The position numbers were made by a program, and so were the translations under genes. The notes under the pieces were generated by a model that was not told where the DNA came from, did no database searches, and saw nothing but the letters and a program-made list of their open reading frames with translations. Of a stretch of 54,885 nt of DNA, positions 10,220-54,678 are shown piece after piece (the stretch's first letter is position 1; each line of letters opens with the position of its first letter). The stretch covers positions 40,782,461-40,837,345 of the forward strand of contig NC_068991.1 of the NCBI RefSeq assembly GCF_001194135.2, in the 5' to 3' direction. This DNA is from Octopus bimaculoides (Eukaryota).

Positions 10220-10747
<528 letters not shown>

Positions 10748-17999: not shown

Positions 18000-18517
18000 N
18001 NNNNNNNNNNNNNNNNNNNNNNNNNNNNNNNNNNNNNNNNNNNNNNNNNNNNNNNNNNNNNNNNNNNNNNNNNNNNNNNNNNNNNNNNNNNNNNNNNNNN
18101 NNNNNNNNNNNNNNNNNNNNNNNNNNNNNNNNNNNNNNNNNNNNNNNNNNNNNNNNNNNNNNNNNNNNNNNNNNNNNNNNNNNNNNNNNNNNNNNNNNNN
18201 NNNNNNNNNNNNNNNNNNNNNNNNNNNNNNNNNNNNNNNNNNNNNNNNNNNNNNNNNNNNNNNNNNNNNNNNNNNNNNNNNNNNNNNNNNNNNNNNNNNN
18301 NNNNNNNNNNNNNNNNNNNNNNNNNNNNNNNNNNNNNNNNNNNNNNNNNNNNNNNNNNNNNNNNNNNNNNNNNNNNNNNNNNNNNNNNNNNNNNNNNNNN
18401 NNNNNNNNNNNNNNNNNNNNNNNNNNNNNNNNNNNNNNNNNNNNNNNNNNNNNNNNNNNNNNNNNNNNNNNNNNNNNNNNNNNNNNNNNNNNNNNNNNNN
18501 NNNNNNNNNNNNNNNNN
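18000..18517. other. Assembly gap (N run). Other gaps at 23886-23985, 32968-32977, 36104-36767, 50772-50967
   Basis: Seen directly. Confidence 1.
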
Positions 18518-22617: not shown

Positions 22618-22715
22618 TCAAATTGCTGAACATGATTTAGGGTTGGGAACCTCACATTTACATTTGTCCTCCTCTGGAACATCTTTCATCACACTTTCAA
22701 TGTGCTTCCCACAAC
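22618..22715 (-). CDS. 48-aa Cys/His-rich microprotein, coding exon 2 (G-CGKHIESVMKDVPEEDKCKCEVPNPKSCSAI*)
   Basis: Pyrimidine-rich acceptor ttttacatttcag|GT TGT GGG AAG CAC; TGA at 22618-22620; ATTAAA about 85 nt downstream (22528-22533). Joined CDS is 49+98=147 nt = 48 aa + stop. Confidence 0.85.
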
Positions 22716-23746: not shown

Positions 23747-24039
23747 CATACATGTATTTACATATATATATATATATATATATATACATACATATATTTA
23801 TATATACATATATATATATACATATATATACATACATATACATGTGTATATATACATACATGTATTTATATATACATATATATATNNNNNNNNNNNNNNN
23901 NNNNNNNNNNNNNNNNNNNNNNNNNNNNNNNNNNNNNNNNNNNNNNNNNNNNNNNNNNNNNNNNNNNNNNNNNNNNNNNNNNNNNGCGGACGTTAAACGA
24001 TGATGATGATGATGATGATGATGATATATATTGAAGATT

Positions 24040-27200: not shown

Positions 27201-30200
27201 ATGATGGCAGCCATTTTTCTAGTTTAGTCATTTTTGACCACAGTGTGACGGAGGAGGATTGTGTTTTTGAGACTCGCTGTTGTTATTACAATTATTATTA
27301 TTGTTGAAGTGACTTACGTGTGTTCGTTATTCACTACTGTTATTGTTTTTGCTGTTTTTCTCCCCGTTGTGAGTGAGAAAAGGCTTAGCTTTTCCTATCA
27401 TGGAAAGCTATGCAAGGATTGCTGCAGCAAAGGCAGCTGCACTGTTGGAAGCAAGGCAGATGGAGGTTGACATGGAGGAGGTTTTGAGAGGTGAACAACT
27501 TAAGCAGAGGGTGGGAGACACTATCTATCCACAGGAGACAGTGAAGGATGGGAGCGACGAGACGGTGGTGTACCGCACACAAGCGGTTGCCATCAGCAGG
27601 ATGGAAAGGTTGTCGGAGGACGATGTTGAAGAGTATCTGGGAGATGTAACAAGGAAGGCTACTTTTATTGGCAGAGGAGGAGGTGCAGCGCAGTGGAGGT
27701 GAGGTTTGCCACCAAAGATGGGGCGGTCTCACATTCCACCACCATTCTGGGTTCAAGCAGGGTAGTGCTGTTGCCCACGTATGGGGGAGGGCACAGCGTT
27801 CGAGTCAGAGTGGCAAGAGTGCTGCCTGAAATCAAGACAGAGTGGTTGGTGGCAGCTGTTCTGGCTGCCACTGAGGACAGTCTAGAACTGGGACTGATGG
27901 GAGAGACAAATACGTTAAACTGGTGGGGATTTGGTGTAGAGATATGGCTTTTTTCCACATTTGGGGACATAGGGCAAGTCCCCTACCAGATTGAGATTGC
28001 AGAGGAAGGTGTGCTGAAGGTTGTTGTAGAGGGACGACAACCCAATTGTTGTATATGTGGAGTGAGGGGTCATGTGAAGATGCAGTGCCCCAGGTTTGAG
28101 CATGCTCAGAGCGAGAAGGTAGGGGAAGGGGAGCAGGAAAAGGAGATGGGAGAGCTGAAACAGGGAAGGAGAGAGCTGAAACAGGGAAGGAGAGAGCTGA
28201 AACAGGGAAGGAGAGAGCTGAAACGGGGAAGGACAGCGGCGATGTTAAGTGTGGCAGTGATGCAAAGGAGAAGGAAGGGATTGAGGTAAGAGGTAGAGAA
28301 AGGGAATGATGGGTTTGTCAGCCCCAAAGGAGGAAGGAAGGCTAGGACAGGAGAGTATTCACAGGGACCAGCAATAGAAGCCAAGAGGAGGCCACAAAGG
28401 GGTGAGGAACAACCTAAACCTGAAAGTATGCAAGCAGTGGGAAGAGAAGCAACAGGGGAAGAGGAATGTAATTGTAAGGGATTCCTGATGGTCTGCGAAA
28501 GGAGTGTGGAGGTGGAGAGAAGAATGGCGGAGTGGAAGGGACTGGTGAGGATGAGGCTGTCCAGAGAGGAGTTTGACGGAGATGATAGAGGAGCTCTGGT
28601 GTGGGACAGGGGATTTTGATGGATTTGTGGATGCATTCGGTGGATTGGTAAGTGTGATGGACAGGATATGGTTGCATGAAACTCCGCCGTCTGTAGTGGA
28701 ATATGAACAGTAGAGGGAAAAAAAAGAGGAAAGACTGTCAAAAAATCATGTATAAATGTAATCATTCAACTCAAGGGGTCAAGTGGGCACTGTGCTTCAT
28801 TTTTATCGTTCTTTCCTAATTTCATTCGTTTCTTTTATTTTTTCTTCTTTACTCAATTTCCTTTTTGCAATTTTTAATTGGGAAAAATTAGTCGGCTAGC
28901 AACTCAGCACCTAGAGAGGCAAGTCGATGCCTTCAGACAGCATCGTAGGACGTTGGATGGAGGGCCAAATTAAGTTGCTAGGGTTCTGGTTTGGTTTGGA
29001 CCTCCAGGTAGAGAAGAACTGGGCTGAGGTTTCGAGCAGGGTAGCTCACATAGTCAGGACCTGATCTTGGCGGTGACTGTCCCTGAAAGGGAAGGCAGAG
29101 GTGGCCAATGTGTTCATCGCATCCATCACTGCCTACCGCCTAACCGTCATTCCTTGCCCAGATTTGAGGTTGATCAGGTTGGAAAGACAGCTCTTTTGCT
29201 TTATGTGGAAGGGCTCGAAGCCAGTTGTAAAACGTTCTATTTGCTGTCAAAGACCGTTAAAGGGACGACTAGGGATGCTCTGGCCATTGAGGAGCAAACA
29301 TGCACTGAGGTTGAGGCATCTCTGGATTCTTCTGGATGGTGAACGGGAAACCTAGTGCTTTTGTAGATCTTGGTTGAGTGAGTGACATATGGAATGTCGC
29401 AAGGTCCTCTTGTTATTCCGTTGCTCGGGTAATTAAATTTTAGTCTATTAGATATAGCATAGGTTTAGTGGCTAGAGAGTGTAAGCGGGAAGAAGATATA
29501 GTTAAGGCCCTATAGGAAGTCATGAGGACTGGCAGTGCATCCCAGGTGAAGATGAAGAGACTGGAACTTAACCAGCACCTCGAAACCAAGCACATTCGCG
29601 CAGTGGGCTGCGAGGGAATCAAGGCTGCTGGATGGGCCCCCGAGAGGTGGAAACCCAATGTGGATATTGATTCCATAGTTTGATCTTTGGTCAACCAACA
29701 AGGTGAATTGATAAACGAACCTGAGGAGATTTGTAAGACCTTTCAGGAGTACTTTGCCCAGCTTAGCTTTTCCAGGGTGGGGGTCGATGGACTGGATAGT
29801 AGGTTGGACCTTACAGACTTCTTTGCTGGGCTGCCACATCTCTCGGTGTAGGATATGGAGTGCTGTGAAGGGTTGATCACACCTGAGGAAGTGATAGAGA
29901 CTATGAAGGATATAGGTAAGGTACCGGGTTTTGATGGTCTGCCTTATGAATTGTATAAGATTCATGTTTGGGCAAGTTGGAGAGACAGATCTTCCACTTC
30001 TTGTGGAAGGCCTCGACTCCACTTGTGAGACTTTCTATCTGCTGTCAAAAACCGTTAAAGGGTGGACTAGGGATGCCTTGGCTGTTGATGTGCAAACATG
30101 CGCTGAGGTTGAGACATCTTTGGCTCCTCTGGATGGTGAATGGGTGTGGTCTCTGCTGGCGAAACGGATGTTTCCCAGGTTCACTAGTTTTGTCGGATGG

Positions 30201-31110
30201 GAAAACTGGTTCCATCGAAGATCGAAGTTGGGTACATGGTACACAGAGTGTTGTAAGGCTCTCCTGCTTTTCTGTCACTCAGGCAATGCCAGTGGTTTTG
30301 GTACAACCGCATACTTTTATAGCAGGTTGGTAGAGTCTGGTTGTGATGATGCCCTAGGGAAGACCCTGGGTCTGGATAATAATCAACTGGACAGTTTGTT
30401 CCAATGGACGTTCGGGCCGAAGACATTGGATAACTTTGGAGCCTTACCCGTTCGGGATAAGCTTACTAGACATGGTCATCCCAGCCCATCAGCCTGTCCA
30501 ACATGCGAGCAGGATAGGGAAACCATCCTGCACTCTATTGTTCAGTGTCCAGAAGTGTCAAAAGTGTGGGCTTATGCAGAACACCTGTTATCTGACACAA
30601 GAAGAGTACAGCTGTCGTCTGAATCAATTATAAAAATTGACCCACCTGATTTTCTAACAAAAGAAGGTAAGAATTGTTTTCTCATGGTAGTAGCAATCGC
30701 GAGAGAGGTGATATGGAAGTCGAGAATGAAAGGAATGGCAACAGGCAATTTCATCTCTGTTCTGGGGCCAGTGAGTTTTTTCACTTTTCACCTGAAAAGG
30801 AAATGCCTGTCAGAGAAATGTTCAAAAATAGATGAAAGTGTGTGGCATGAGTGCTGAGCATGAAAGATACCTCGTGAACATGCCATAGACCTTATCACAA
30901 GTATCGGTGGTGGGACAGGGCTTGTGGAGTTGGAGCATAATCCCATTTCATCACCTCATTTGTTTTGTCTTTTGTTCGTCTATCATTCATTTTACATATT
31001 TTTATATATTTAATTTTTAAATGCATCTCAATGTTTTTTCATCCATTTCCTCTGACCCCGAAGATTAGATTGTATTGTCCCCGCTATGTTGGCCCCTTGT
31101 GGGCAATAAA
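27201..31110 (+). mobile_element. Tx1/L1-clade copy B (ORF1 with CCHC knuckle; rearranged ORF2)
   Basis: ORF1 27373-28289 is frameshifted and contains CCICGVRGHVKMQC. ORF2 pieces include GKVPGFDGLPYELY and CPTCEQDRETILHSIVQC. 3' end matches copy A. Confidence 0.9.
28149..28233 (+). repeat. Four 21-bp tandem units (GAGAGCTGAAACAGGGAAGGA) encoding ELKQGRR in Tx1 ORF1
   Basis: Seen directly. Confidence 0.9.
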
Positions 31111-32950: not shown

Positions 32951-33249
32951 ATATATATATATATATANNNNNNNNNNTGTATTTCTTCTATCTTAATGAA
33001 TAAAAATTCTTCTGATAGAATAAATGGGTTAATAGAAACCAATGTAGCAAAGAACATAAAATAACTGTGGTTTAGTTCCTGTTTTTAAGGCAGGAACTCC
33101 TTGAAATTTTGGGTATTTGAGTATATTTAAGAATTTATATATATATAATGCAGAGGATCTGAGAAGACAGGAAAGAAATGAAGCAAGCATGCTCCATTGG
33201 ATGTGCAATGTAAATGAGCATGAACAACAAAGTACAAATGCATTGAGAA

Positions 33250-33410: not shown

Positions 33411-36400
33411 CTCAGTGGAACTGAGTTCTGATGGAGGTGTGTGTGTGTGTATTTGCACAGGTGGGCCCTTCACCCAATTTCCTTCCTCCTCAGGACACCT
33501 TTACCACCCATCATCTCATTAACTGCAGCTTTTCTTTGGTATCACTTATTTTCTTACTACTCAGAACCATTTCATTTGTTAGCCACTCTTCATCCATTAA
33601 TACTGTTCTCTTCACTTACACTCTCATTTACCACTACTCCCACAGAATCAACAATTATCTCTCCTTCCCCACCTCCATATATTTCTCAGCTTCTTCATGC
33701 ACTATGCCTGCCTCTCTCTTCCCCACATACTCCTATAACCTATCCATCACCCTTCTCTCGTCCTTCCCCTGTCTACTGTTTCATCATTACTATTCTGCTG
33801 CTAAGCACTGTCAGTCATCTCCTCTCCCACCTCATTGTTTTCTGGCTCTGCTCAATCACTTCTATCCTCTCATCTAAAATATGAGTAGTCATATAGCTCA
33901 TCTACAGCAAGAAACCTGTTCTGCTCTGGACCCTTTTCTCTTGCCTTTACCACTTATCTCCTCATATGAAATAGCCCCCAGCCTTACTAGTGCTGGTGAC
34001 ATGAAAAAAAAGCACTCAGCACACTCTATATAGTGGTTGGCATTAGCAAAGGCACTCAGCTGTTGAAAGCATGCTAAAGTAGACACTAGAGCACAATACA
34101 GTCTTTAGGTCCATTGGATCCAACCCACACCAACATAGACGTTAAATGATGATGATCATCATCATATATTGTAATCTAAGAGATGTTACATTGATGACCT
34201 TTCCATGTAGATTAAGCATATCAATCAGTACAAAGCAGTCACACTTATATATTTATGCCTCACATACAAAACTTTAAAATTGAAATATAATTAAAATAAT
34301 TTTAGCATTAAAAAAAAGAAAAACATAAGCATCAATTTTGTTTTTCATAGACGAAAAGTATCTATTTTAATTGAACAAATTGGGGAGAATTTTAAAACAC
34401 ATTTTTCTGTGAAGGATAAATATTTGATATTTCAATGTCTGCTTCAATTATGTTGACCTTTCAGTGTTTTTCTACATTTTAATATTTGAGTAACATTAAA
34501 CATTAAGGCAGCGAACTGGTAGAATCATTAGCACATCAGTCAAAATGTTTAACAGCATTTTGTCCATCTTTACATTCTGAATTCAAATTCTGCCAGGGTC
34601 GACTCTGCCGTTTGTCCTTTCAGAGTCAATAAAATAAGTACCAGTTGAGCACTGAGGTCAATGTAATCAACTTAGCCCCACCTCTGAAATGGCTGGTCAT
34701 GTGCCAAAACTTGAAACGAATATTTAAGTAGCGTTTTGAGCATTTAATTGTCAGTTGATGACTTTACCACATTCCATTTAAATATGATTATGCAAGACAT
34801 AAAATGTTATGAACAAAATGTTTAAGCAGGTAAATTCACTTTTATTGAAAGCTTTCTGAAGTTTAATGACAAATGTATCAAAGAATTTTCATAAATGCTG
34901 AAATGTATTCAAACTTGTTTCAGCCTAAATTCCAATTTTTTATTAGTAAATCAGGTCAGATGTAATGTTCAGGGCCTTTGCAAGCCTTCACAGACTGGTG
35001 AGATTGATGAACAGTTAAATCTATGTTACTGTTGTACTGGATTCCTGTTATTCTGAGGTTATTAGCAATAATGTAATCTAAGAGCTATACATTTTAAATA
35101 CTTGTTGATCTAGTACAAACTGGTAGAAATTTAAGCTATTGTAGCTGTCATGGAAACAATAGCATTATCAAAGATAGGGTTTTCATTAGGAACAGTATGG
35201 CCAAACGATTAAGATGTTCACTGTTATTTTCTACAACCTCGGATCAACCATCACCCCATGACTGAAATTGGGTAGATGAAAACTGCATAGAAGCCTGTCA
35301 GTAGATTATACCTGTAATTCAAATGGTACAGCTTCATCGCACACACTATATTATGCTGATTCTACCAGAGAATTAAATTAAGGGTAAATGTGTCAAATAC
35401 TCAGACACTTACACTTTAATTTAGGAACAGGTTACTCGTTTGATCAAACACCTGAATCATTATCAACAAATGGCAGAGACCAACTAATGCACATATAATA
35501 TATATATATATATATACATATATACTAGCATACCTGTGTCATCAAATATGCAGAGTTTTATTAATGATAAAAAATGAGAAAAACCATTAATAAATGTCAG
35601 CAATCTAGTAAATATATGTACATACAAAGAATTGAAGCACTTGAACAATCAGATACGATTGTAACGTCTCGGTTGAAAATATTCGCCCACATAATGTGTG
35701 AATACACACACACACACACACACACCTGTACATTTACATATATATGTACATATAAATACACACACACAGGCCACCACAAAGTATATTAACCTACATTTAT
35801 ATATACATATAAATGCATAGACATATCTCTCTCTCTCTCGTAGAGACACACACACTCATATATACAAATATGCATACATATTTATACTCATATTCATATA
35901 CACCTACAGATGTGCATGGATATACATGTGTGTATGCATGTGTGAGTATATGAATGTGTATGTATGCATGTATGTTTGTTTACATTTTTTCGAAATCAGT
36001 AAAATATGTTATCCTTTACACTTGGAAAAGGAAATAAGGCCTTGGGTAAAAGATGGAAAATGGACTAAAGAAAAAAGAGAAAAATGAAAGTACATAACTA
36101 TATNNNNNNNNNNNNNNNNNNNNNNNNNNNNNNNNNNNNNNNNNNNNNNNNNNNNNNNNNNNNNNNNNNNNNNNNNNNNNNNNNNNNNNNNNNNNNNNNN
36201 NNNNNNNNNNNNNNNNNNNNNNNNNNNNNNNNNNNNNNNNNNNNNNNNNNNNNNNNNNNNNNNNNNNNNNNNNNNNNNNNNNNNNNNNNNNNNNNNNNNN
36301 NNNNNNNNNNNNNNNNNNNNNNNNNNNNNNNNNNNNNNNNNNNNNNNNNNNNNNNNNNNNNNNNNNNNNNNNNNNNNNNNNNNNNNNNNNNNNNNNNNNN

Positions 36401-37699
36401 NNNNNNNNNNNNNNNNNNNNNNNNNNNNNNNNNNNNNNNNNNNNNNNNNNNNNNNNNNNNNNNNNNNNNNNNNNNNNNNNNNNNNNNNNNNNNNNNNNNN
36501 NNNNNNNNNNNNNNNNNNNNNNNNNNNNNNNNNNNNNNNNNNNNNNNNNNNNNNNNNNNNNNNNNNNNNNNNNNNNNNNNNNNNNNNNNNNNNNNNNNNN
36601 NNNNNNNNNNNNNNNNNNNNNNNNNNNNNNNNNNNNNNNNNNNNNNNNNNNNNNNNNNNNNNNNNNNNNNNNNNNNNNNNNNNNNNNNNNNNNNNNNNNN
36701 NNNNNNNNNNNNNNNNNNNNNNNNNNNNNNNNNNNNNNNNNNNNNNNNNNNNNNNNNNNNNNNNNNNATATATATAGCGGTAGTAGCGTCAATTAGACCC
36801 AGAGGTTTCAGGTAATGCTGAATAAGTGCTATGGATAGACTATAGTTGGGCTCCAGGTTCAGTTATTATGCGAATAAGGGGTCCAACGTAGGTCATAGAT
36901 CAGCATGTGTAGTAAATCCATATATATATATATATATATATATTATATAGGTATGTTGGTGCAAACAGGGAAAATAGAACTCAAAATATGAGTATATGTA
37001 TATATTTATTAATATTTAGCAGAAGTAACAGGGTGACTCAAATTTTTGTGCATTATCAACTTCTGCTAAATATTGATAAATATATATTATCATTTACATA
37101 ACATTTATATATGTTATGTGAATGATAATATTTTGAAAACAAAAGTGTTTAATATTTAATTTCATATATATATTTGTGTGTGTGTGAAACTAATAAAGTA
37201 CATACAATTTACGATAAAAATTTTCAGTTTTTTAATAAATCATTAAAATATCATTGTCATTAGAGCAAAATCTTTGAATGTTGTTCGTCTGCTTTAGCAT
37301 CTGTGATTGTCAACCACTCCCAATCTGTTAGTTGTTTTACCCTTCTTTCCGTAGCATGACCAATGGGATATACATTGCGTCTTATTATATGTATGTGTGT
37401 GTGCACATGTATGTGTATATATATATGTGTGTATGTGTGTGTGTGTGTGTGTGTGTAAGTATGTATATGCGTGTGTATGTACATGTGTATATATATGTAT
37501 GTATGTCATTATTCAGTTTATTTCAAGATTTCTTGCCAATAAAGAAAGAGCTGGTTTCTAACCTAGAACCAAGGCTCCTTCATTGGAATTTCAACATCAA
37601 CAACAGGGTATTTTTGTTTGTATGTATGTCTTCTTCTGCATATACTTGCATATCTAGACAACCTCATATATACTTATAAGATAAATTTCTGGAAAGTTT

Positions 37700-37850: not shown

Positions 37851-39738
37851 TGTGTGTGTGTGTGTGTATGTAAGAATGCATGCATGCATTTTCTTGTTCA
37901 GTAAAAATTTCTTTCAAAATATTTAAACGTGCTGCATGTTCTGCTTATTATGTATTGAGTATGCCAATCACGATGTGAGGCCTATTAGTGATAAACAATG
38001 AAAACTTGCATGATTCTAAATTTAAGGCAATTTCTTTTTAAAAAACAAATACTACTCCTTTTCATTAGTCACATTGTCAATCTCACAAGATGTAACAAAA
38101 TGCAAACTTATACTTTATTTACTGGAAAGAGTTCAGTTATCCAAAAGAAACATTGCATTAAGAATCATAACAACAGAAATATCGATGATGAAGTTTTAAA
38201 TAATAATCCATTTCTTAAACAGCTAAAAAAATTGATTTCTAAGGAAAAGGATGTGAGATTATATGCTGTGCTTTTCTCAAGACAAACTGTTGACAAACAA
38301 AGTCAAATCAGTTAACAACTGTAAATAAAAATCAAGCGATTTAATTGGTAAAATAGATTGATAGTGCTTTCTCCATATAAAACCTATGTGTGGGCCTCAA
38401 TGTGGTTGCTCAACCTGATAAAATAGCAACCAAATCTCCTCCATATTATACCCTGTTCTCTTAAATGAAGGACACATTATATAATGTAATCATCTTAGAT
38501 GCACTATGCTTGATATATGCACGGAGAGTCATGGCTGATGCCTTTCATCAGAATTATTCTGCTTGATCAAAGCAAATAACAAAACAATAAAAATGGTGTC
38601 AAGAATTTGTTAATACTAAATATTTTGATACACCAAAGATTTGACACAACTATTAAAAAGACTCAATTTCTCTAAAAAAAAAAAACAATCATCACCTACC
38701 CTATGTGAAACTAATAAAACATATTTAGAAAAATGAATGTTATTTAGGTTGAGTATTTGCAAAATTAAACACTGTAGTACAGCTGAAAGGGTGTAACCTA
38801 TTAATATTACAAAAATAAATTCAATAAAGTTAATATAAAAGCAATTTTCTTTTTTTAACTCTGAAAATGGAATATTACTCTCTGACTAAAGAACAACCAT
38901 GATTGTTTGGTTTTAGGTTGGCCAGTATTGAACAGATCTATGATTCTAACTATTAACTATCCTACCTTTTCACAAACAATGCATATTGGTGGATGGTAGA
39001 ATTCTGATGATGACAGGGATACAGTTGTTTGATGAGCTAAGTGGGTGAGCATTCCACAGACATGGATATCTTTAAAGTAATTCTCAGGCAGAATAAGTGT
39101 GACACAGGCTTCTACAGTTTCCAACTACTTATATTTATTCACAGATTATAAGCTGACCTGAGGTTAGAAAATGACATTTGCTCAAAATACCATATAGTGG
39201 AATCAAACCTGAGAACTTGTGGTTGTAAAGCAAACCTTTCACATATACTACTCCTACAAACAGTGTATATAGAGCTCTACATCATCCAAATGCATCCTTT
39301 CTTTAAGACAGAGGTTATGATTTGAAAAAGGTTTTGATGTTTTTTCTAGCAAGATGAGCAACCACAAAAAGGCTCTTTCAGCTATTGTGGCTACATTACA
39401 CATGAATGGATCACAAAACAAGAATTTGTTTTTTTACTTACAGCATATTTTGTGTTATTTCTGAAGCAACGGGAAATAATATTTATTTGTTTAATGTATT
39501 AGAAAATTATTACAGATCGACCTTGTTCCCCTTCGAATGATATATTTAACCGATCTACAACAACTTTCTTTAACAAGAAACTAATAAATTAATTATTTCT
39601 TATGTTTTCTGGAGGTAGAATGTTACTTTCATTTGTTCAAGTATCCATGTCTTAATCCATTTCCTGTACAAGACTCAACAAGTGATTAATTAAAATAAAT
39701 TTGTAATTTGCACAAGTATGAGGTTTTAAATGTCATCA

Positions 39739-41232
39739 TTATGGTATCCAGGTGATAACTTCTGTGATCTTTGACTGTCTATGATTTTGAACAGCTATAG
39801 ATTCGCATAAGTCTTCAACAGCATAAAAACTGTCAAAATTTTCACAATTGTTCTCTTCTAAGAATCTTCTTACTGTTGACAGAGCAAGTCCAACATCTGT
39901 TGTAGAGACAGGTAGCATCACATCTTTATCATCCTCATCATTGCTGTCGTTACTATCTGTTGATTTTGCATCATCACTCATGAATGAGGCAACCAGTTCT
40001 TCATATGTTGGGATACTGTAACACTCCAGATCATCATCTTGAGTAACATACTCTTCAAACTGCTCTTTTGTCAACATAGTAGGCGGGACTACCACATCTT
40101 CTTCAGCAGGTGGAGTGTCAACACATGTAAAACCAGCTTTCTGGAAACAACTGACTATTGTAGAAGTCTTCAGATTGTTCCATGATTTTGCAATTAAATG
40201 AATAGCATCCAATAATGTGATTTTCTTGGCATTTGCTTTAATCTCTGGATGACCATCAATGTCAAGAATAAGATTTCTGACCAAGGCACTTCTATATAGT
40301 GATTTCAGAGCTTTTATAATGCCTTGGTTGCATGGTTGTTTTACTTTTATAATTTTTGATGGAAAAAACATCAGTTTGACTTGTTTAAGATTTGTAATTG
40401 CTGGGTGGGCAGTACAACTGTCAACAAGTAATACAATTTTTCTTTTCTTTCGAGTCAGCTCGATGTCAAATTCTCTCAGCCATGTAGTAAATATCTCTAA
40501 GGTCATCAAAGCATTTTTACTGTGTTTGTAGGTTACTGGGAGTGTTTTCCCATTGAGGCTTCTGGGGTCTTTATTTTTGCCAATCACTAATAATTTTCTT
40601 TTGTCATTTCCTGACATATTGGATGCCCCCATAATTGTAACTCTATCTTTGTAATTTTTGGTTCTGCTCTTTGTCTCTGACTTGAGGGTAAGCGTAAAGT
40701 CTGGAAGGGCTCTGTACAACAATCCAGTTTCACCTGCAATGTAGATGTCATCAGGATTGTAAGTCTGTAGAATCTCAGGTAATACTGTACGTGTCCAGTT
40801 ATCAACTGCATCTTTCTTCTCACAATTAAGCTTTTTGAATCTGATGTTATGTCTTACTTTCCATCGAGATAACCATCCACTTGTAGGATTGAACTCTGCT
40901 CTGTTTAGATGCTCTGCTAAATCTTTGGCCTTTTCCGACAGAATAGGTCCTGATAAAGGAATGCCTCTGGACTTGGCATTGTTGAACCATTGAGATAATG
41001 CCCCCTCTACATCAGCATCTTTTCCAGATCGTTGCCTTTTTCTCTTTGGATTGGCATTAGATCGATAGTTTGCTATAATTTCTTCTTTCTTTGAGGTCAG
41101 TCTGGATATCTGGGATTGTGAACATCCCAGTTTCTTTGCCACTTCTGTCTGGGACATCTTCTGCCCCAGCAGAATAACTGCTTCATACTGGTCAGCAATT
41201 GACAGATCGTTTCTTTTCCTCTTGGTTGTCAT
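39739..41232 (-). CDS. Tigger/pogo transposase-derived protein (TIGD/CENP-B-like: HTH-psq, HTH CENP-B, DDE_1), 497 aa, probably domesticated
   Basis: Uninterrupted ORF with Tigger motifs (LSIADQYEAV, GIPLSGPILSEKA, GWLSRWKVRH, IYIAGETGL, RKIVLLVDSCTAH, QPCNQGII, ITLLDAIHLIAKSW, TIVSCFQKAGF). No TIRs seen; AATAAA at 39482-39487. Confidence 0.88.
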   Translation of the reverse strand: MTTKRKRNDLSIADQYEAVILLGQKMSQTEVAKKLGCSQSQISRLTSKKEEIIANYRSNANPKRKRQRSGKDADVEGALSQWFNNAKSRGIPLSGPILSEKAKDLAEHLNRAEFNPTSGWLSRWKVRHNIRFKKLNCEKKDAVDNWTRTVLPEILQTYNPDDIYIAGETGLLYRALPDFTLTLKSETKSRTKNYKDRVTIMGASNMSGNDKRKLLVIGKNKDPRSLNGKTLPVTYKHSKNALMTLEIFTTWLREFDIELTRKKRKIVLLVDSCTAHPAITNLKQVKLMFFPSKIIKVKQPCNQGIIKALKSLYRSALVRNLILDIDGHPEIKANAKKITLLDAIHLIAKSWNNLKTSTIVSCFQKAGFTCVDTPPAEEDVVVPPTMLTKEQFEEYVTQDDDLECYSIPTYEELVASFMSDDAKSTDSNDSNDEDDKDVMLPVSTTDVGLALSTVRRFLEENNCENFDSFYAVEDLCESIAVQNHRQSKITEVITWIP

Positions 41233-42253
41233 TTTTTCCCCCTGTCTTCTCTAAACCACTCACTTGAATAAATATAATTTGAATATCGATTTATAAGACC
41301 CAGAAGGCGACAGTTTACTCCAAGCTTGGTATGGTCAAGTCCATTACTTCTTGAAGCAAATGTACATCTAATTTATCTTCCACCCGATAGAAGCTATTTC
41401 GTTATCAATACATATCATCTGTTGGCTTGAAGATCATTTGAATTATCAACTGAGGTTTTGCTATGTCCCATTCATATTTTCCAGTTACCCAGACTTAACG
41501 AGATCCATAGGCCCATCCATAAGCCCCAACATCGACTTTCATATACTTTGAAATAAAGATAACTTGAGTTACGCGGATTAAGAAAATTCAGTTGCCTCAA
41601 TCGCAGGTTCACGAAATAGATAATGAAAACAACAAAAAACGTCCATTCACCGCTTTGATTCAAAACTACTGCTTTACAAATTTTATCAACAACAAAGATT
41701 TTTTGAAGAATTTGATTACGCAGCGAAACCAAAGACAAAATATATAAGGAATCTGAACTTCAACAGTCTTTAAATGTTTTGATATTGCAAGATTAACTTC
41801 GATATACTTCTTTCTGTTTACATCGGTTGGTTGTAAACATGATGGTTTGACTATTGTCAGTTTAATTCATCATGAAACAAGCTTCCACAGTCATTTTATT
41901 CATAGAAAATCAAATAAATAGTTATTTTTATGCTACATTTTGTTTTGTGTTACTTAAAAATCCGAATAAATCTTATGCAATTAATCGGAATTAATTCCGA
42001 TAAAATGGCCCTACGTTTCTTTTAACGACTCGAATTTCAAACACAAAAATGTACTTGCAATTTTGATTAATCGTGCTTCGATGAGGTTCAGAGTAATACA
42101 AAAATAATTAATGGTTAAGCTAGATAAACTAATTTTTTTTTTCTTAATGTCTGCATTACAAATAAAAAAAAAAATACAACATCCTATATGGAGAAATTAC
42201 ATTCTGACAGAAAGTTTTGTATTTGGAAATAAATTATAGAAACTTTCTCTCAC

Positions 42254-42302
42254 CAATCCACGTTGTCTTTCCACAGGTATCACAAGTCGCTTTCTTACAC
42301 AT
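42254..42302 (-). CDS. 48-aa Cys/His-rich microprotein, coding exon 1 (MCKKATCDTCGKTTWI-G)
   Basis: Read manually on the minus strand: ATG TGT AAG AAA GCG ACT TGT GAT ACC TGT GGA AAG ACA ACG TGG ATT G|gtgaga. The phase-1 donor matches the phase-1 acceptor at 22715. Confidence 0.85.
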
Positions 42303-43149
42303 TATGAAAATTTTCGTGTTTTGTTTCTTCCAAGATCCAGAATATTATATTTATAAGTGTCAAAAGTCTCAACTTCTCCCTTAGCAACTCAAAAGCCTCC
42401 GAATTCTGTAGGAACGGACTTGAAACCGCAGTGGGCATATTTTTCTACGTTAAAAGAAATAGTTTCACCTATCGGCCTCCTTATAAAGGAATGTTTCGTA
42501 ATTATGTTAAGAAAATTAATTGCTTTTCGTTAATTTCTACACAAATTATAAATATTGTTTCATTTACTTTTGTAAATTTTCGAAGTAATTAAACACTATA
42601 AGAAAAAAAATTGTAATACATTAAAAATAGTTTCAGTTATCGTTCTCCTTGCAACTGAATGCTTCATAATTATATTATGGAATCTTTTTTTCATAAATTT
42701 CTGGATAAATTATAAATATTAATTCGTTTATTTATGTAAATTAAACACCTTAGGCAAAAAAATAAACTAAATTAATCTGTTTGCAAGCAGTATAACGAAC
42801 TGTGTAAAAGGATTATGGCGTAGTAATACGTAATCTCAGCCAGAAGGATAGGGTGGAGACCATTGTCTTAAACAATATGACTATAATATATAAGAATGTT
42901 TATTAAAGAGCTTCAACTAAAATAATAACAGTGAATAACAATTTCTCATAATAGCACAACTTCAGAGTGTGGTATGAATAAAGGTTATAGATCTTGTAAA
43001 TACAGCATTTCATTTCTAGACAACTACTTTTTCCTGTATTTCTTTTGTTTTTTTTTCACGACAGAACGAACTTGTTATTTCTTTTCTCGTTAAATATTTA
43101 TACGGCATTCGTAAATACACTATAACGTCTGTCCGTTTGGGTTGTGGAT

Positions 43150-44928: not shown

Positions 44929-47900
44929 CAGCCTCCTGCTAGACTTGAAATAGTTGAAAAAAAGTAGAGATGGCGTATGTAAATATGCAGTGCAAAAAGC
45001 AGTAAGAACATGGAATACAAACAGAAGGATGCAATAAACAAAAAACTGAAATGAAAAGGCAAAGCATGGTAAGGGTAAACAGAATATGAATACAAAGAAA
45101 TAAGCAAAATGTTCAAGTTGAATAGGTAAAGTTCAAAGGAATACTATAAAGAACAAAACTGCATCATTGGTGATACGTGTTGAAAAGCTTTTGGTAAGTT
45201 CACAGATAGTTCGATATAGTTCAGATGTATATAGCTTTAGACAGCTCGATGGGCCAATGTACACGGTGACCACTACAAGTCATAGTAATGTATGTAGATG
45301 GAGGAGGGGTTGGTGTGTGTGATGGTGTTGGTGGTGGTTGCAGTGGAGTAGTATTTGTTTTATGTTGTTCTTTGAATGTGGGAAGTGTATGAGGTGGCAT
45401 TGTATCACTGTCTGTGTATGCCTGCTTAAGCCGGTTTATTGAGACAGTTTACTTTTTACCATTAATGTCTATGGTATATAGTTTGTTTGTGTGCAACAGG
45501 ACACGATAGGGTCCCATGTATGGAGCTGTGAGAGGGTTTTTCACAGCGTCATTTCATAGAAACACATGGGTCCAAGAATCAATGTCTTTCGGAACTGATG
45601 ATTTAGTGGTTTGGTCTCGTGTTGACACTGGTGGCAGTTCTTGCATGTATTTGTGTATGTACATAGTGGGGTCTTGTGTGGACAGATCTACTGGAGCCAA
45701 CATCTGGCCTGGCAATGAAAGAGGTGTGCCATAAACAAGTTCTGCTGGGGAATAACCGAGATCCTCCTTTATCAAGGCTCAACAGCCAAGAAGATATTCT
45801 GTTGGAAGATATTCACTCCAATGCTGCTGATCTGGGTAGGCATGCAAAGCAGGTTTCATTTAACGGTGGAACCGTTGGATTGTAGATGGTAACTGGTGGT
45901 TCGAATCCAACATGCACCTATGATCTTCATGAGCTCATGGAAGAGTTGCAATTCAAACTGTTTTCCAGTCGGTAGTGATGGTGGTGGGGACTCCATATCG
46001 TGATATCTATCCTGTGAGAAAAACTTTGGCAACAGATTCTGCAGTGATATCTACTAAAGGGATAGCTTCCAGTTAACATGTGAAATGACCAATGCAGGTG
46101 AGCAGGTAGGTATATTCCTGGCTGACTGGCCAAGGTCTGACAAGGTCAATGTGTACATGGTGGAAATGCACATCTGGTGTGTTGAATATGCCAAGGGGTG
46201 CTCGGATGTGCCTATGCACCTTTGACTTCTGACAGAAAAGGCAGGAGAGTGATCAAGCAGTGATGTCTTGTCTCATATTTGGCCAAAAGAATCTAGCCGA
46301 AATGAGTTTCACTGTGGCGGTGACGCCAGGTTATGCAGTGTACTGAAGACTGTCTGTCTGTGGATCTCCGGAACAAAAGGACAAGGAGAATTTGTGGAAG
46401 TATCGCACAAAATCTGTGCATCAGCTGTGGGTAGTACTTGAAGTTGCATGTGGCAAAGGCATCTGCTGCAGTGTTATCTATACCAGAGATGTCAGTGGTA
46501 AAAGGGAAAATGAAATCCAAGTGGCTGGTTTTCTGCGGAGAGTACTTGTCAGGCTTCGAACGCAGGGCAAAGGTGAGTTGCTGTCCCTTGAGTGCGTGCC
46601 AGAAATGCCTGACTGCTAAATACATAGCTAACAGCTCCCAGCCGAAAGTGCTGTAGTGAGTTTCAGCTGATTTAAGCTGCCGAGAGAAAAAGGCAAGAGG
46701 CTGGAGTTGTTGCTGGTGAAATTGTTGTAACACCATGTCTATGGCAGTGTTGGGTGCATCCACTACAAGGGATAGCTGAGCATCTCCGAGAAGGTGGGCA
46801 AGAAGCGATGCCCAAGTGAGTTGCTAATTTTCTGTGTTGAATGAGTCAAGTTGGGTAGAGTCCAACACTATTGGCTCATTCCTCTTTTTCCTCTTCCAAA
46901 GGAGCATGTTTAGCAGATATAAGATTTCAGCTGAATGAGGAACAAAGCATCGGTAGAAGTTGAATAGTCCCAAGAAATGTCAGAGCTGACGTAATGAGGT
47001 AGGTGGAGGTAACTTCTGCAATGCCTTCACCTTGTCAGGCAGTGACAATATACCTTCGGGACTGATGATGTGATCCACACTTGGTAAGTCTTGAACTGCT
47101 CAAACAGCTGACGTACATAATGAAGATATTCCTCGGGTGAGGCACTAGCTATCAAGATGTGTCGATGTATGCATGTATGAAGTCTAAGTCTCGGACGACT
47201 TCATCTACGAACCTTTGAAAATGTGCTGACTGAATTCCATAAATCAAATGGCATAGTTAGGAATTCAAAGGCGCCAAAATGAATGGTTACGGCAGTCTTT
47301 GGAATATCCTCTGGATTCACAGGAATCTGATGGTATGCCTTAACCAAGTTCAATTTGGTGAATACTCTGCAATTGCGGAGAAATGACACAAAATCCTAGA
47401 TGTACGGTTTTGGGTACCTGTCTGGCACTGTGATGGAGTTTAATCTCTTGTAGTCATCAGTAGGCCACCAGTCCCCGGAATGCTTTGGAAACATGTGCAA
47501 GAGTGATGTCCTGGGGCTATTAGAGGGGAAGATGATGCCCAACTGGAGCATGTGGTTATATTCTGCCTTGGCTGCCTTTAGCTCCTCCAAGGAGAGGTGG
47601 CGAGGGTGAGAAAAAAACCAAAGCACCTTTAGTTTCAATGAAATGGGTAGTGGTGTGAGTTGGAGCAGCAGTAAAAAAATTTAGGTTTGTCAGCTCCAGA
47701 TATGAGTTTAAGAGTGCAAGGTATGCGTCGTCCGTGGTAGCAATGAAGAAGACTGGACTAACCGCAGGGGTTAGTGGCCTTTTACCTAGGATAGAAAGTT
47801 CTATGGTCACGTCCCATAAGCGCCGAGTGCACATGTCCACAAGCAGGTGGAAGTGATGCAAAAAGTCTGCACCTGATATTGGGTAAGGGAAGTCACGTCG

Positions 47901-49383
47901 CAGATCTAAATCCAACAAGCGAGATATCTGGCCAAAAGCTGGAATTGATGAATGGTTCACCACCTGTAGTGTCACTGGTGATAACAGCGATTTATTCGCG
48001 AGTAGTTTTAACAGCCAGATACTGCAGGCAGCGGGCATGGGATATCCAGTCTGTTATGAAAAATGCACATTTGGTTGCTTGGCTGCTGCAGAGAATGTGC
48101 TGTGCTCAATCCTCTGGTTGGTCATTTTCCTGTTGAGAAAAAGTACAGAGTTGGGTACATTTATGTGCTGAAGCTCCAAACTTGGCATGGTACCAGCATA
48201 TGGATGAATGAGAAGAAGACAAGCAAGGGCAAGGTGAGAAGGAGCAATCGAAGGAACACCGTCTGGGTGAACATGACCTGGAAGTGCGAAGGAGCTGCAC
48301 TTCTCTCGTTAATTCAGCTATCACCTTTAGGATAGCAGCCAAGGCAAGGTCCTTATCAGTGGAAACTGATGCTACTGGTAGGTGTGCAGAGGTATTCAGT
48401 GGTACTGGGGTCGGCTTGGTGGTGTTGCCGGTATACTCTATGATTCTGTTGACGGTGGAGGCTATTTGCTCAACGGGAGTCATCTCTACTAAAGAGATGT
48501 TAGAGGGCAACCGGGGAAAAAATAGTTGTTTCAATAAAACACCATCAGCAGGTGCATTTTGGGCCAAGTCCTTTATACAGCGCAGAAGTTGCAAGGGTTT
48601 ACGGTCGTCCAAGTGCTCATCATTGATGAGGGTTTGAAATTTTCTTTCTTCCAGCAAGGACGTGTGTCGAAGAATCTCCTGCTTAATCCTCCTATACATG
48701 GCATCATGTGGGGGTTCGGTTATCAGGTCCCTCACGGTGGCTGTCAGGGACTGTGACATTGTATCAAGTAATATATGGAGCTTTTGGGCTTCAGAGGCCA
48801 TATTGTTTGTGGCAAATGTTGATTCGATCTGTGTCAACCACACTTTCACATCGCATGTGAAACAAGGTAAGGAACTGCTGTTCATGGTGAGACATGTAGC
48901 AGAAAGATGTCAGTTACTGGGGAAAAGTTTGTAAAATGGCATGTGACCATGCTGTAAGATATAACAGATAGCTTAGGCAGCTGTGTTGTATCCACGTGGG
49001 GTATTCAAAGTTAGTGTACATGTGTAGCTTGAGAAATGGCGTCAAAATGTGTGAAGAAAGACAAAATGGCGATGAGCTGCATGGTGTATCAGTTCATGTG
49101 TGCAAGAGAGAAAAGGAACATTTGGTTATTTCCCCACCACCAAATTTTTTTGTTTTTAGTCCGACTCAGCTACAAGAACAAAAGTGAATTATTTTTTTGA
49201 GTGTCGACATCCTAGCAACAGATTGTTCATATATAAAAATGTGTTGGTGTAAGTGCAGTGTGTTTGTAAATGACTTTGGTGTGTGTTTCCTTAGTAACAC
49301 ACATTTTTCTTTGAACAAGGTGTCCGACAAACCACTATATACACATATATATGTATATATTTTTTTTTATATCAGGGTCACCA
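44929..49383 (-). mobile_element. Degenerate near-full-length Ty3/Gypsy internal region (PBS, gag, protease, RT, RNase H, integrase)
   Basis: PBS-like TGGTGACCCTG at 49383-49373. Gag 48885-48106; RT FTKLNLVKAYHQIPVNPEDIPKTAV; RNase H PLAFFSRQLKSAETHYSTFGWELLAMYLAVRHF; integrase HVHIDLV and LGYSPAELVYG. PPT-like AGCAGGAGGC near 44930-44940. Many stops and frameshifts. Confidence 0.92.
48106..48885 (-). pseudogene. Gypsy gag-like ORF remnant (259 aa)
   Basis: VWLTQIESTF and EERKFQTLINDEHLDDRKPLQLLR motifs, and a C-terminal CWYHAKFGASAHKC, typical of this Gypsy gag class. Confidence 0.8.
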
Positions 49384-50771: not shown

Positions 50772-51059
50772 NNNNNNNNNNNNNNNNNNNNNNNNNNNNN
50801 NNNNNNNNNNNNNNNNNNNNNNNNNNNNNNNNNNNNNNNNNNNNNNNNNNNNNNNNNNNNNNNNNNNNNNNNNNNNNNNNNNNNNNNNNNNNNNNNNNNN
50901 NNNNNNNNNNNNNNNNNNNNNNNNNNNNNNNNNNNNNNNNNNNNNNNNNNNNNNNNNNNNNNNNNNNATACAAAGAAAACAAGGACAGGTCATTCGGAGT
51001 TTTCTTTCCTCAGTTGAGATCCAGATTATCTTTGCAATTTCGGCTGGTTATTCTCGATA

Positions 51060-52230: not shown

Positions 52231-54380
52231 CCGTTAGATCTGGGATGGTATGGTGCAAGAGTTACATGTTTTACAGCAAACATTTTACAAAACTTTTTAA
52301 ACTCAAAAGATAGAAATTGTGCTCCATTATCAGACACTATAGTGTCTTGAATGCCAAATCTCACAGACATCTCATGTAGAAAGTTTGTCATAGTTGAGGA
52401 GGTTGGCTTCTTACACTTACAAATTTCTGGCCATTTAGAGGAACTTTCTACTACCACTAAGTAGCATGAGCCGTTAGAGGGACCAGCAAAATCAATGTGT
52501 AGTCCCGACTACAAAACAGGTACTTCTGGCCAAGGTTCACTTTTTATTGTTGGTAATTTCACTGTTAGAGCACATCCTCTGCAGCCTTTCACTAAATTTT
52601 CAATTTCTCAATCCATTTTTGGCCAGTACACGTAGCTATGCATTAAAGCTTTCATCCTTGAAATACCAGGATATCTAACATGGAATTCTCTCAACATTTT
52701 CTTTTGCAGTGTTTCAGGTATTGTTACTCACTGTGCATACATCAGCACACTATCACAAATTGAATATAGGTTCATGTTTTGGTTTCATTTTGCATCAATC
52801 CTGTTTCTATTTACTTTTCCTTTTCACAGTATTCTTTTCATTTCTGTTATGAATTTGTCCTTTCCTGCATTTCATTTTATGTCTTTAGGGTCACCGGTAA
52901 TTTGCGTACCACATTCTACATTACAATTTTTTATTTCTCCTTCTGATCTTAAAGCTGTAATTACCATAGCTCGCAATGCTTTGGTATCAGTCTGGACAAA
53001 CCATCCGCATGCTCTAGTTTCTTTGGTGGTACATGTTCCATTTTGAAATCATAATTCAATAATGTAGTGCCCGTATATTGACAGTAGACAGAAACTTCTT
53101 CCATGAATAAATCTAAGGAATTTTTTACACCAAATATAATTGCTAACGCTTCCTTTTCTATTTGGCTATAGTTCCTCTCTGCTGGTAATACATGACATAT
53201 GGCTATAGCCTTTTTACTCCCATCGTCATATCTGTGCAGAAGCACTGCTTCTACAATGCAATCACTTGCATCTGTAGCCAATATAATATCCAGCTTCAAA
53301 TCAAAATGCGTTAACGATAAATCAAAATGTTTTTTAATTCATCAAATGCTTTCTGACATTTATCAACCCAGCACCATTTTGCATTTTTCTTTAACAAATC
53401 ATTTAGTGGAGCCCTTACACTGTGTATATTGAGAATATAAATTTGATAGTAATTTACTAAACCCCAAAATGCTTGTAGTAGAGTCACATTATTCGGTGTG
53501 GGCATATTTTTTATCACAGTTGCTCTGGAGGGATCTGGTTTCCATCTGTTTTTATCTATTATCTGGCCCAAGTATTTAATTTTTTTCAGAAAGAATTTGC
53601 ATTTTCCTTCACTTAGCTTAAAGCTGTATTCTCTTATCTTTTCAAATACCTTTTTACGTGTTCTATATGTTGTTTGTGTGATTCACTAAATAGGCGATAG
53701 CAAAATCACAGTCCGCCAGCATTGTATCTGCAGAAAGTGAGGTTGGCACTGGATGGGTGCCACACAATTCCTTACATAGTCGTGGAAGGAAAATAGCGGC
53801 ATAAGAATAGCCGAACAAATAACAATATTTATTCTCCGTCTGTACAAACGTTACATCTCGGGACAATCAGCAGCCAGGTTACCTTGGTGTGGAAGCAGCA
53901 GAGTCGGTTTAATCACAATTGTGAAGGCATTCTTCACAGTTTAGCCAATATCGTGTGACGCCTTCAGATCTCTAGCTACACAGAGCTAGTCAAGATTGCG
54001 TGCATCTAGGTTGGCAGCAGGGACGAAGAGAGTGCCTGGCGGTCAAGCCTAGCGGCTGCTGATTAAGGTCTATGCGCATAAGGGACTTCCAGCAGGCCTT
54101 CCAGAAGTCTCTAATCCCTGTGCATGTGTGGATGAAAATCCCAAAATGGCGACTGGAACCAGGCGTCACTACATATCTATTACTTGTTGAAATATGGAAG
54201 GGGCCAATTTTACACTGAAGGGAAGCCACTTAAATTTAGATAAGCCATGGTGTGTATTAATGGTTAATAAATGTGAGCATTCTTCTCCTTGGATTTGTAA
54301 GTATGCCTTCGAGACGTCTAATTTTGAGAGAGTGGGGGGGGGGAAGAGAGAGGGAGGGAAAGACAGAAATATCATTTATT
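52230..54380 (-). mobile_element. Degenerate Ty3/Gypsy pol fragment (RT, RNase H, integrase), interrupted by a solo LTR
   Basis: LSKLDVSKAYLQ...LAPSIFQQ; LGQIID...PDPSR; ATDASD...AERNYSQIEKEALAIIFGV; IVSDNGAQF...APYHPRSNG. Confidence 0.9.
53729..54173 (-). mobile_element. Solo LTR (445 bp) inserted in the RT of the Gypsy remnant
   Basis: Minus strand reads TGTAGTG...CTGCA with an internal AATAAA. 4-bp TSD TATC at 53725-53728 and 54174-54177. Removing it restores FQQVIDTMLADCDFAIAYL. Confidence 0.85.
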
Positions 54381-54613
54381 GCAGTGTTGAATAAAGTGAG
54401 AAACCCGAAGAGTGGTTATATCAACCAATGCTGGGATTAAATCATTTCCTCACAGGAAAATGAAGAAGTGAAAGAACATTGTGTGGTTGTTTAAAACAAA
54501 AAGTTTATTACCTGTGAGTGGCAATCATCATCAATTAGTTTGTATCGATTATAGCGCCAGGGTTCATATAATATAACTGTCATACAATGTATCTGTTTGA
54601 AAAATACAAAGAC

Positions 54614-54638
54614 AATAATAATAATAATAATAATAATG

Positions 54639-54678
<40 letters not shown>
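54614..54678 (+). repeat. (AAT)n microsatellite. Other microsatellites: (TA)n at 3240-3270, 4070-4135, 23690-23885, 50728-50771; (CA/TG)n at 35700-35725, 37430-37455; CAC/CAT-rich tract at 7140-7390
   Basis: Seen directly. Confidence 0.95.

Follow-up and report, generated by a model that had tools for sequence, protein, structure and literature searches.

A 54,885-nt stretch of Octopus bimaculoides DNA (hereafter the window) holds on its minus strand, at positions 39739-41232, an intact transposase-like open reading frame (ORF) of 497 codons from ATG to stop, and the question raised by this locus is whether that frame belongs to a mobile element or to a gene of the host. The gene is O. bimaculoides LOC106870636 / XP_014772267.1, whose sequence is given in Supplementary Table 1 of PMC10027918; RefSeq names it TIGD4(-like), and the O. 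sinensis protein XP_029642547.1 'tigger transposable element-derived protein 4'. We find that the ORF stems from a transposase, that it has lost the hallmarks of a transposon together with catalytic residues whose loss is shared among octopods, that its syntenic orthologues have evolved under purifying selection, and that it sits inside an intron of a small gene of the host. Very probably it is an octopus gene that arose by molecular domestication of a pogo/Tigger-type transposase, and its product is likely to be a sequence-specific DNA-binding protein devoid of catalysis.

The coding sequence (CDS; 39739..41232, minus strand, as are all features of the gene given below) is intronless, encodes 497 amino acids plus stop and is the longest ORF in the window, which has a GC content of 36%; the second longest encodes 308 amino acids. 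An in-frame stop lies seven codons 5' of the ATG, and the frame is therefore not part of a longer one. A preliminary description of this DNA, made from the sequence alone, had reported a stop-free frame of 497 codons with two intact N-terminal helix-turn-helix (HTH) domains, and both were borne out. The first HTH, CENP-B_N, spans residues 4-53 (41074..41223; Pfam 23.1 bits, cutoff 21.2) and is modelled with a predicted local distance difference test score (pLDDT) of about 84-87. The second, HTH_Tnp_Tc5, spans residues 73-134 (40831..41016; Pfam E=4.4e-15). Both in sequence (E=3.3e-11) and in predicted fold (Foldseek E=3.2e-5) the HTH region resembles 1HLV, the DNA-binding domain of CENP-B, and basic KRKR stretches are found at residues 4-7 and 63-68. 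An RNase H-like (DDE_1) former catalytic core follows at residues about 160-365 (40138..40755), with Pfam DDE_1 assigned to residues 195-363 (E=1.2e-40). The AlphaFold2 model, built from a 24-sequence input, had a mean pLDDT of 74.6 with core strands at 90-94, and Foldseek matched the modelled core to Mos1 transposase (E=5.8e-6), SETMAR and the Sleeping Beauty catalytic domain. The C-terminal region, residues 366-497 (39742..40137), consists of a disordered acidic stretch and then a conserved helical pair, with helices predicted at 444-460 and 467-483 (pLDDT 78-91). A CENP-B_dimeris domain was not detected by Pfam at E<=0.01.

The state of the active site was read from an alignment of 24 sequences, 21 of them non-octopus. 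At the position of the first catalytic Asp the octopus protein has Gly167 (codon GGT, 40732..40734; YIAGETG against the consensus YNADETG). The second Asp is kept as Asp271 (GAC, 40420..40422; LLVDSC against LLVDNC), and at the third position, with a spacing of 30 residues from D271, stands Asn302 (AAC, 40327..40329; KQPCNQG against IQPCDQG). The earlier readings of these motifs as AGETG, LVDS and QPCNQG thus held at identical codon coordinates, and G-D-N is common to all four octopod sequences. A column was counted as conserved when at least 80% of these 21 sequences agreed in it. In the pre-DDE and DDE region all octopus copies depart from the relatives at 16 of the 82 columns so defined, against only 2 of 28 across both HTH domains plus the linker joining them. 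The replacements concentrate at the catalytic pocket (N165I, D167G, W242L, N272S, L290F, P292S, N293K, T295I, S296K and D302N); N165 and W242 are conserved in 21/21 relatives and the remainder in 17-20 of 21. The N of NADETG and the W of NAWMT are lost, and PPNTTS has become PSKIIK. This concentration indicates that the catalytic pocket was taken apart in a protein that otherwise retained its fold and its DNA-binding module, and with two of three Asp and several adjacent active-site motifs gone, the octopus protein should no longer be able to cut or join DNA.

A further change lies in the tail. The consensus of the PIP box (the PCNA-interacting peptide) is Q-x-x-[ILM]-x-x-[FY]-..., and in the same alignment residues 486-493 of the octopus protein (39754..39777) form a degenerate motif of this kind, QSKITEVI. 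Its seventh position is F or Y in 18/18 relatives that carry such a motif, and every octopus copy has Val there, the octopus tail reading QSKITEVITWIP against QSKITEFINWIP in the relatives; in the copy from the more distant octopod described below the Ile of the motif is changed too. The C-terminus of pogo transposase binds PCNA (Warbrick 1998, as cited in PMC4231638), and to judge from the residues of the octopus tail this transposition-linked interaction has probably been lost.

Orthologues were found at the same place in other octopods, as a domesticated gene had been predicted to show. The 90%-identity cluster of the protein has four members, namely the window protein, O. vulgaris CAI9730179.1, O. 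sinensis XP_029642547.1 and a 496-amino-acid protein from a Logan contig (run SRR11869394), and among 5.8 billion proteins the best match outside this octopus cluster was 54% identical. The O. vulgaris and O. sinensis orthologues both have 497 amino acids, their loci are collinear with the window over ~20 kb, and a 5.2-kb block at the gene is 94% identical. The Logan contig (L003; 3.2 kb), which comes from a more distant octopod, is collinear over the gene and both flanks at 88% identity, and its copy differs in length by a single in-frame codon deletion. L003 is without a poly(A) tail and may be of RNA or DNA origin. The depth of this synteny is that of the octopods.

Purifying selection was likewise evident. 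By the method of Nei and Gojobori (NG86), the ratio of nonsynonymous to synonymous divergence (dN/dS) was 0.17 against O. vulgaris (dS 0.084), 0.16 against O. sinensis (dS 0.084) and 0.19 against the Logan octopod (dS 0.17), well under the value of one below which the preliminary description had expected it. By region, dN/dS was 0.07 for the HTH part (residues 1-140), 0.20-0.29 for the DDE core (P<=2e-3) and 0.14-0.20 for the C-terminus. As NG86 is blind to transition bias, substitutions were also simulated on the CDS with the spectrum of the aligned flanks, in which transitions outnumber transversions about 2:1. Against O. vulgaris, 17 of 42 substitutions were nonsynonymous where 30.4 of 42 were expected (binomial P=1.5e-5), and against the Logan octopod 38 of 87 where 63.8 were expected (P=5.6e-9); each of the three protein regions was significant alone (P 2e-2 to 9e-5). 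The probability that no stop would have arisen was 0.11 for O. vulgaris and 0.014 for the Logan octopod. No frameshift was seen: in the comparison with O. vulgaris the flanks (3.7 kb) carry 25 indel events and the CDS none, and in that with the Logan octopod the flanks (1.8 kb) carry 28 and the CDS one, in frame. Identity was 97.2% in the CDS against 95.2% in the flanks for O. vulgaris, and 94.2% against 88.5-90.2% for the Logan octopod.

The origin of the gene could be traced to mollusc transposons. Its nearest relatives are 'TIGD4-like' proteins of Gigantopelta, Argopecten and Pecten together with unnamed metagenome and Logan proteins, at 43-54% identity, most of them with D-D-D intact (one, P0004, reads AVETG at the first Asp); some of the related 90% clusters hold 84-311 member sequences. 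Of three examined, two proved to be transposons with terminal inverted repeats (TIRs). In the Gigantopelta aegis copy (P0002, locus L004) a 33-nt inverted-repeat match, 88% complementary, spans the TIRs, the ends reading TA followed by CAGTCAAATCCACTTAATTGGATGT..., and in the metagenome copy P0004 (locus L006) a 46-nt match, 83% complementary, does so, with TA flanks and sub-terminal motif repeats. The transposon ends of the relatives begin CAGTCnAwTCCRCTTAAT... and are TA-flanked. TIRs were not found for the third relative checked, at the Pecten locus L005. Sub-terminal direct and inverted copies of the TIR core (TCCGSTTAATCTGATA) occur in L006 at 4669-4739 and in L004 at 1628-1760; from their sequence and placement they are probably transposase binding sites and candidate targets of the octopus protein. 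Another G. aegis protein, the 'TIGD6-like' P0014 (372 amino acids), is an internally deleted copy of the mollusc Tigger family without the DDE core; over the matched stretch, 37% of the query, its identity to the octopus protein is 67%, the N-terminal HTH region and the C-terminal tail being alike. In molluscs, RefSeq gives 'TIGD-like' names to host genes and to copies of transposons alike.

A neighbour-joining tree was bootstrapped 300 times; its vertebrate members were shark TIGD3-like proteins, with no bona fide tetrapod TIGD4. In it the octopus clade (100%) was sister to the Gigantopelta element (76%) inside a mollusc-type group (83-96%), and it joined the shark TIGD3-like proteins in 0% of replicates. 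The octopus stem branch measured 0.42, against 0.25-0.31 for the terminal branches of transposon copies. With the members of this tree, the phylogeny that had been called for places the octopus clade within the mollusc Tigger-like elements. PMC7386202 dates the rise of vertebrate TIGD4 to lobe-finned fish or tetrapods, and this date, together with the nesting among mollusc transposons, argues that the octopus gene was domesticated independently and, its RefSeq name notwithstanding, is no orthologue of TIGD4.

At the octopus locus itself the marks of a transposon are gone. TIRs and a TA duplication flanking the ORF were not found, the inverted matches seen being weak and AT-rich; the motif that marks the TIRs of the closest related transposons was absent or at chance level in the 55-kb window; and local alignment of all four TIR arms to both flanks gave scores under the 95th percentile of shuffles. 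The absence of TIRs and of a TA target-site duplication, noted from the outset, thus stood, with the TIRs and TA flanks detected in L004 and L006 as positive control. A candidate TIR remnant, TCCGATTAATTGCAT at 41975-41989 (minus strand), 0.75 kb 5' of the ATG, is the sole match in the window to the TIR core of the relatives; it was rejected, having 2 mismatches where 1.17 chance matches are expected. The near-palindrome TCGGAATTAATTCCGATTAATTGCAT at 41978-42007 (minus strand), also 0.75 kb 5' of the ATG, is kept in L003; its resemblance to the relatives' TIR core TCCRCTTAATTGGAT is not above chance. The gene is present once in the window and on one contig per species in the 90%-identity protein cluster, and the other published O. 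bimaculoides CENPB-like proteins that we compared are at most 33% identical, leaving no close paralogue. These counts, drawn from the window, the protein collection and the published CENPB-like proteins, agree with the expectation of a single copy. A very weak tblastn match to the Tigger DDE region at 14107-14571 (minus strand; 22% identity, E=0.011) is an unrelated or very distant DDE remnant and not a second copy.

The surroundings of the gene turned out to be those of another one. The RefSeq mRNA of LOC106870636 starts at 42543, 1.3 kb 5' of the ATG, and its modelled 5' region (41233..42543, minus strand, 1311 nt) is collinear with the genome over the readable mRNA stretch and contains 25 upstream ATGs. 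A conserved splice acceptor near the Tigger start codon was not seen in 41233..42543. About 240 nt 3' of the mRNA start, an ATG at 42302 opens 16 codons that run into a strong donor (TGGATTG followed by GTGAGA); we regard this as the first coding exon of a host gene (MCKKATCDTCGKTTWI + G; 42254..42302, minus strand; donor GTGAGA at 42253). The 83-nt stretch holding it is identical at 83/83 positions in O. vulgaris and O. sinensis, the comparison covering exon 1. After the exon junction we took a GCGxH motif to be expected, and a downstream scan for a phase-1 acceptor continuing into GCGxH gave a single match, at 22715, with an excellent acceptor (ttttacatttcag) and then GT TGT GGG AAG CAC. Exon 2 (GCGKHIESVMKDVPEEDKCKCEVPNPKSCSAI*) accordingly occupies 22618..22715 (minus strand). 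The spliced product is a Cys-rich protein of 48 amino acids, MCKKATCDTCGKTTWIGCGKHIESVMKDVPEEDKCKCEVPNPKSCSAI (starting MCKKATCDTCGKTTWIGCGKH...), for which an exhaustive HMMER search of 1.84 billion representatives yielded 785 homologues (E<=1e-3), with alignments that cross the exon junction; the best homologues are mostly of 40-110 amino acids. It matched no Pfam family, a word-index protein search was also empty, and the gene is apparently unannotated in the octopus gene sets examined. The intron between the two exons measures 19.5 kb and holds the Tigger ORF on the same strand, along with assembly gaps and retroelement debris. Since the two-exon product has homologues that align across its junction, we conclude that the Tigger-derived gene is nested in the intron of this deeply conserved host gene. 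An N-terminal extension or fusion of the Tigger protein was considered and rejected, given the in-frame upstream stop, weak acceptors near the ATG that are not conserved in L003, and an exon-1 splice that is out of frame.

A probable 3' untranslated region (UTR) of the Tigger-derived gene extends over 39482..39738 (minus strand), with two poly(A) signals, ATTAAA at 39495-39490 and AATAAA at 39487-39482. Between the stop and these signals, the 200 nt at 39505-39704 are 98.5% identical in O. vulgaris and 96% in the distant octopod, where the flanks overall have 88-95%, and this conservation suggests that the noncoding block is probably a constrained 3'UTR. Within 39305-39704 (minus strand) the next 200 nt are 95.5% (O. 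vulgaris) and 92.5% (distant octopod) identical, and the block is conserved as much as or more than the CDS. Expression, which the preliminary description had listed for checking, was thereby checked in part, through the RefSeq mRNA model with its UTRs and the conserved poly(A) signals of the 3'UTR. In the unspliced model the ATG of the host gene would act as an upstream ORF of 22 codons and the strong donor would be left uncut. An internal promoter or another 5' structure is just as possible as read-through from the host promoter. Further upstream, the O. vulgaris annotation has a same-strand gene (198-amino-acid product) that ends at the equivalent of about 42876, and an AATAAA lies at about 42903-42898 (minus strand), about 330 bp 5' of the Tigger mRNA start.

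Could the ORF simply be a young or recently inactivated transposon copy, too recent to have acquired stops and serving no host function? It is intronless, has transposase architecture and sits in an intron rich in transposable elements (TEs), and the NCBI name 'TIGD4-like' is also given to true transposons such as the TIR-flanked Gigantopelta element. However, collinear orthologues in three named species and a more distant octopod, at dS up to 0.18, fewer nonsynonymous changes than expected (P=1.5e-5 and 5.6e-9), the stop-free chance of 0.014, the lack of frameshifts despite frequent indels in the flanks, the failure to find TIRs and the single copy per contig set have already largely refuted this idea, which we regard as highly improbable. 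Still less credible is that the conservation reflects constraint on the host intron or transcript, as regulatory DNA or RNA, rather than on the protein. The ORF does lie inside a same-strand intron of a conserved small gene, and the flanks within about 2 kb, at about 95% identity, stand at the top of the local 88-95% range; constraint on DNA or RNA, however, would not preferentially spare synonymous sites, nor would it bar out-of-frame indels inside the ORF only, and the codon-position pattern already contradicts it.

Two other explanations grant that the protein is used by the host and differ as to how. It could still be a nuclease or recombinase with a non-canonical G-D-N site, either an excisase taken over by the host or a transposase that acts in trans on non-autonomous Tigger-like miniature elements (MITEs), for the RNase H-like core is under purifying selection (dN/dS 0.2-0.29, P<=2e-3), its fold is well predicted (core-strand pLDDT 90-94), D271 is kept, and some domesticated pogo genes have partial triads, e.g. 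TIGD6 with DD30N (PMC7386202). Against this, two of the three metal-binding carboxylates are lost, one of them to a Gly that has no side chain, the neighbouring conserved motifs are replaced too (the N of NADETG, the W of NAWMT, and PPNTTS to PSKIIK), and TIR-like sites were not found in the 55-kb window; we consider such activity very unlikely. The selected role could also be independent of sequence-specific DNA binding, for instance that of a protein-interaction scaffold formed by the inert core together with the helices at the C-terminus. Taken singly, both of these regions show constraint, and the C-terminal helical pair is predicted confidently. Yet the lowest dN/dS is that of the HTH region (0.07), only 2 of its 28 conserved columns have changed, and it still matches the CENP-B DNA-binding domain, so that this alternative, though less remote than the preceding ones, appears unlikely as well.

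The domesticated, DNA-binding octopus gene remains by far the most probable explanation, and several points weigh against it. The 25 upstream ATGs in the modelled 5'UTR are odd for an efficiently translated mRNA, and transcription is read from the mRNA model and the UTRs. The orthologues found are from Octopus-like octopods only and few substitutions stand behind the estimate of constraint; the maximum dS, about 0.18, means that the domestication may be fairly young. The dN/dS values by NG86 ignore transition bias and may be nearer 0.25-0.3, still well below 1. Copy number is that of the window, the 21-kb orthologous loci and the annotated proteomes. DNA binding, nuclear localisation, a target motif and a phenotype are still putative. 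Of the proposal that the product is a host DNA-binding or chromatin protein, the domesticated host gene is supported by synteny, selection and the dead triad, and the one observation that points to a DNA-binding or chromatin role is that the strongest constraint falls on the HTH region.

As a working scheme, a Tigger-like element would have inserted into the intron of the small host gene in an ancestor of O. bimaculoides, O. vulgaris/O. sinensis and at least one more distant octopod, its source lineage persisting as the TIR-flanked transposons of other molluscs. The inserted copy then lost its TIRs, two catalytic Asp (D to G167 and D to N302) and several adjacent active-site motifs, and purifying selection has acted since, most strongly on the bipartite HTH and more weakly, yet significantly, on the dead core and the C-terminal helices. 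The product would most probably be a nuclear protein that recognises a Tigger-TIR-like or derived motif through its CENP-B-type double HTH, with the inert core and C-terminal helices offering a scaffold on which it multimerises or binds partners, and that acts on chromatin or transcription in the manner of CENP-B, TIGD and JRK proteins. Its transcription might start from the promoter of the host gene, reading through past the exon-1 donor and ending at its own intronic poly(A) signal. One could go further and envisage an octopod-specific regulator, born of a dead Tigger and made as a read-through, intronically polyadenylated transcript sharing the promoter of the 48-amino-acid gene, that binds TIR or MITE remnants of its own family as a cis-regulatory network or a TE-silencing system, like the fission-yeast CENP-B homologues; in this full form the idea is a speculative one, and we think it rather doubtful.

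The rest of the window holds mostly remains of other elements. Fragmentary retroelement ORFs lie at 29931-30857 (plus strand; zf-RVT), 46293-46763 (minus; RT_RNaseH), 48106-48885 (minus; DUF7041, gag-like), 13958-14497 (plus; rve_3) and 54169-54375 (minus; reverse-transcriptase motif). The other TE-derived ORFs scanned in the window were short fragments (zf-RVT, RT_RNaseH, rve_3 and DUF7041); the earlier statement that all other transposases are decayed stands for the ORFs scanned. The retroelement fragments sit where GC content is raised, at 24-31 kb and 45-49 kb, and several are 84-90% identical in O. vulgaris, which marks them as old insertions. A conserved block at 54367-54664, considered as a host exon, was rejected, being a reverse-transcriptase fragment. 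An ORF of 170 amino acids at 10217-10729 (minus strand) has sub-threshold TPT/EamA similarity (21.5 bits, cutoff 30) and may belong, as an exon, to a gene for a nucleotide-sugar or solute transporter. Scanning the window for Rfam families and for tRNAs gave no matches. Assembly gaps appear as N runs at 18000-18517, 23886-23985, 32968-32977, 36104-36767 and 50772-50967, and these account for the low-GC bins in the composition profile.

Recurrent domestication of pogo elements is well established (PMC4231638, PMC7386202), and the octopus gene is itself already known, being listed as a TE-derived CENPB factor in the passages concerned of Mukherjee & Moroz 2023 (PMC10027918), where the entry 'CENPB' Ob_70636 is XP_014772267.1 / LOC106870636. 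Those passages contain no synteny, selection, triad or TIR analysis for Ob_70636, and such genes are described there as having no homologue among the nearest species, in contrast to the orthologues that we found in other octopus species. New here are synteny and orthology among octopods, a measure of the purifying selection, the finding that the G-D-N triad is shared, a living source lineage that still bears TIRs, the degenerate state of the PIP-like tail and the nesting in a conserved small gene.

Like vertebrate TIGD3, TIGD4, TIGD6 and CENP-B, the octopus protein combines CENP-B_N, HTH_Tnp_Tc5 and DDE_1, is encoded by an intronless gene, has about 500 amino acids and carries a degraded triad; in TIGD6 the triad is DD30N, and those of TIGD3, TIGD4 and CENP-B are unrecognisable (PMC7386202). 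Its dN/dS of 0.16-0.19 falls inside the range of 0.14-0.21 given for vertebrate TIGD3, TIGD4 and TIGD6 in the same study. It is nevertheless not orthologous to the vertebrate TIGDs, of which shark TIGD3-like proteins were the only relatives recovered (38-41% identity), and it differs from CENP-B proper in having no detectable Pfam dimerisation domain. With the mollusc Tigger-like transposons (Gigantopelta aegis P0002, P0004 and the pectinid copies) it shares 48-54% identity over its full length, the order of domains and a C-terminal ...QxKITEFINWIP tail; these elements mostly have D-D-D, TIRs in two of the three checked and in part large clusters, and the octopus gene has none of these. Drosophila CAG, fission-yeast Abp1/Cbh1/Cbh2 and the lepidopteran CENP-B-like genes are likewise independent, lineage-specific pogo co-options that keep the DNA-binding domain, assessed like the octopus gene by the criteria of Feschotte and Pritham (PMC4231638); the octopus gene differs from them in source element and host phylum and in being known from sequence only; CAG, moreover, keeps PCNA binding, whereas the octopus PIP-like motif is without the conserved aromatic.

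Repeated co-option of pogo/Tigger elements is well documented in vertebrates, flies, moths and fission yeast, and lophotrochozoan cases have so far been catalogued by sequence similarity alone. By the domestication criteria of Feschotte and Pritham, as used in PMC4231638, the octopus locus is a clean cephalopod case in most respects, with synteny, selection, a dead triad and lost TIRs. Because living transposon relatives can be identified, the ancestral binding site can also be guessed, as the TIR motif CAGTCnAwTCCRCTTAAT.... The general picture is left unchanged and the interest of the case is modest; the octopus gene is a reasonable candidate through which to study regulatory innovation specific to the octopus lineage.

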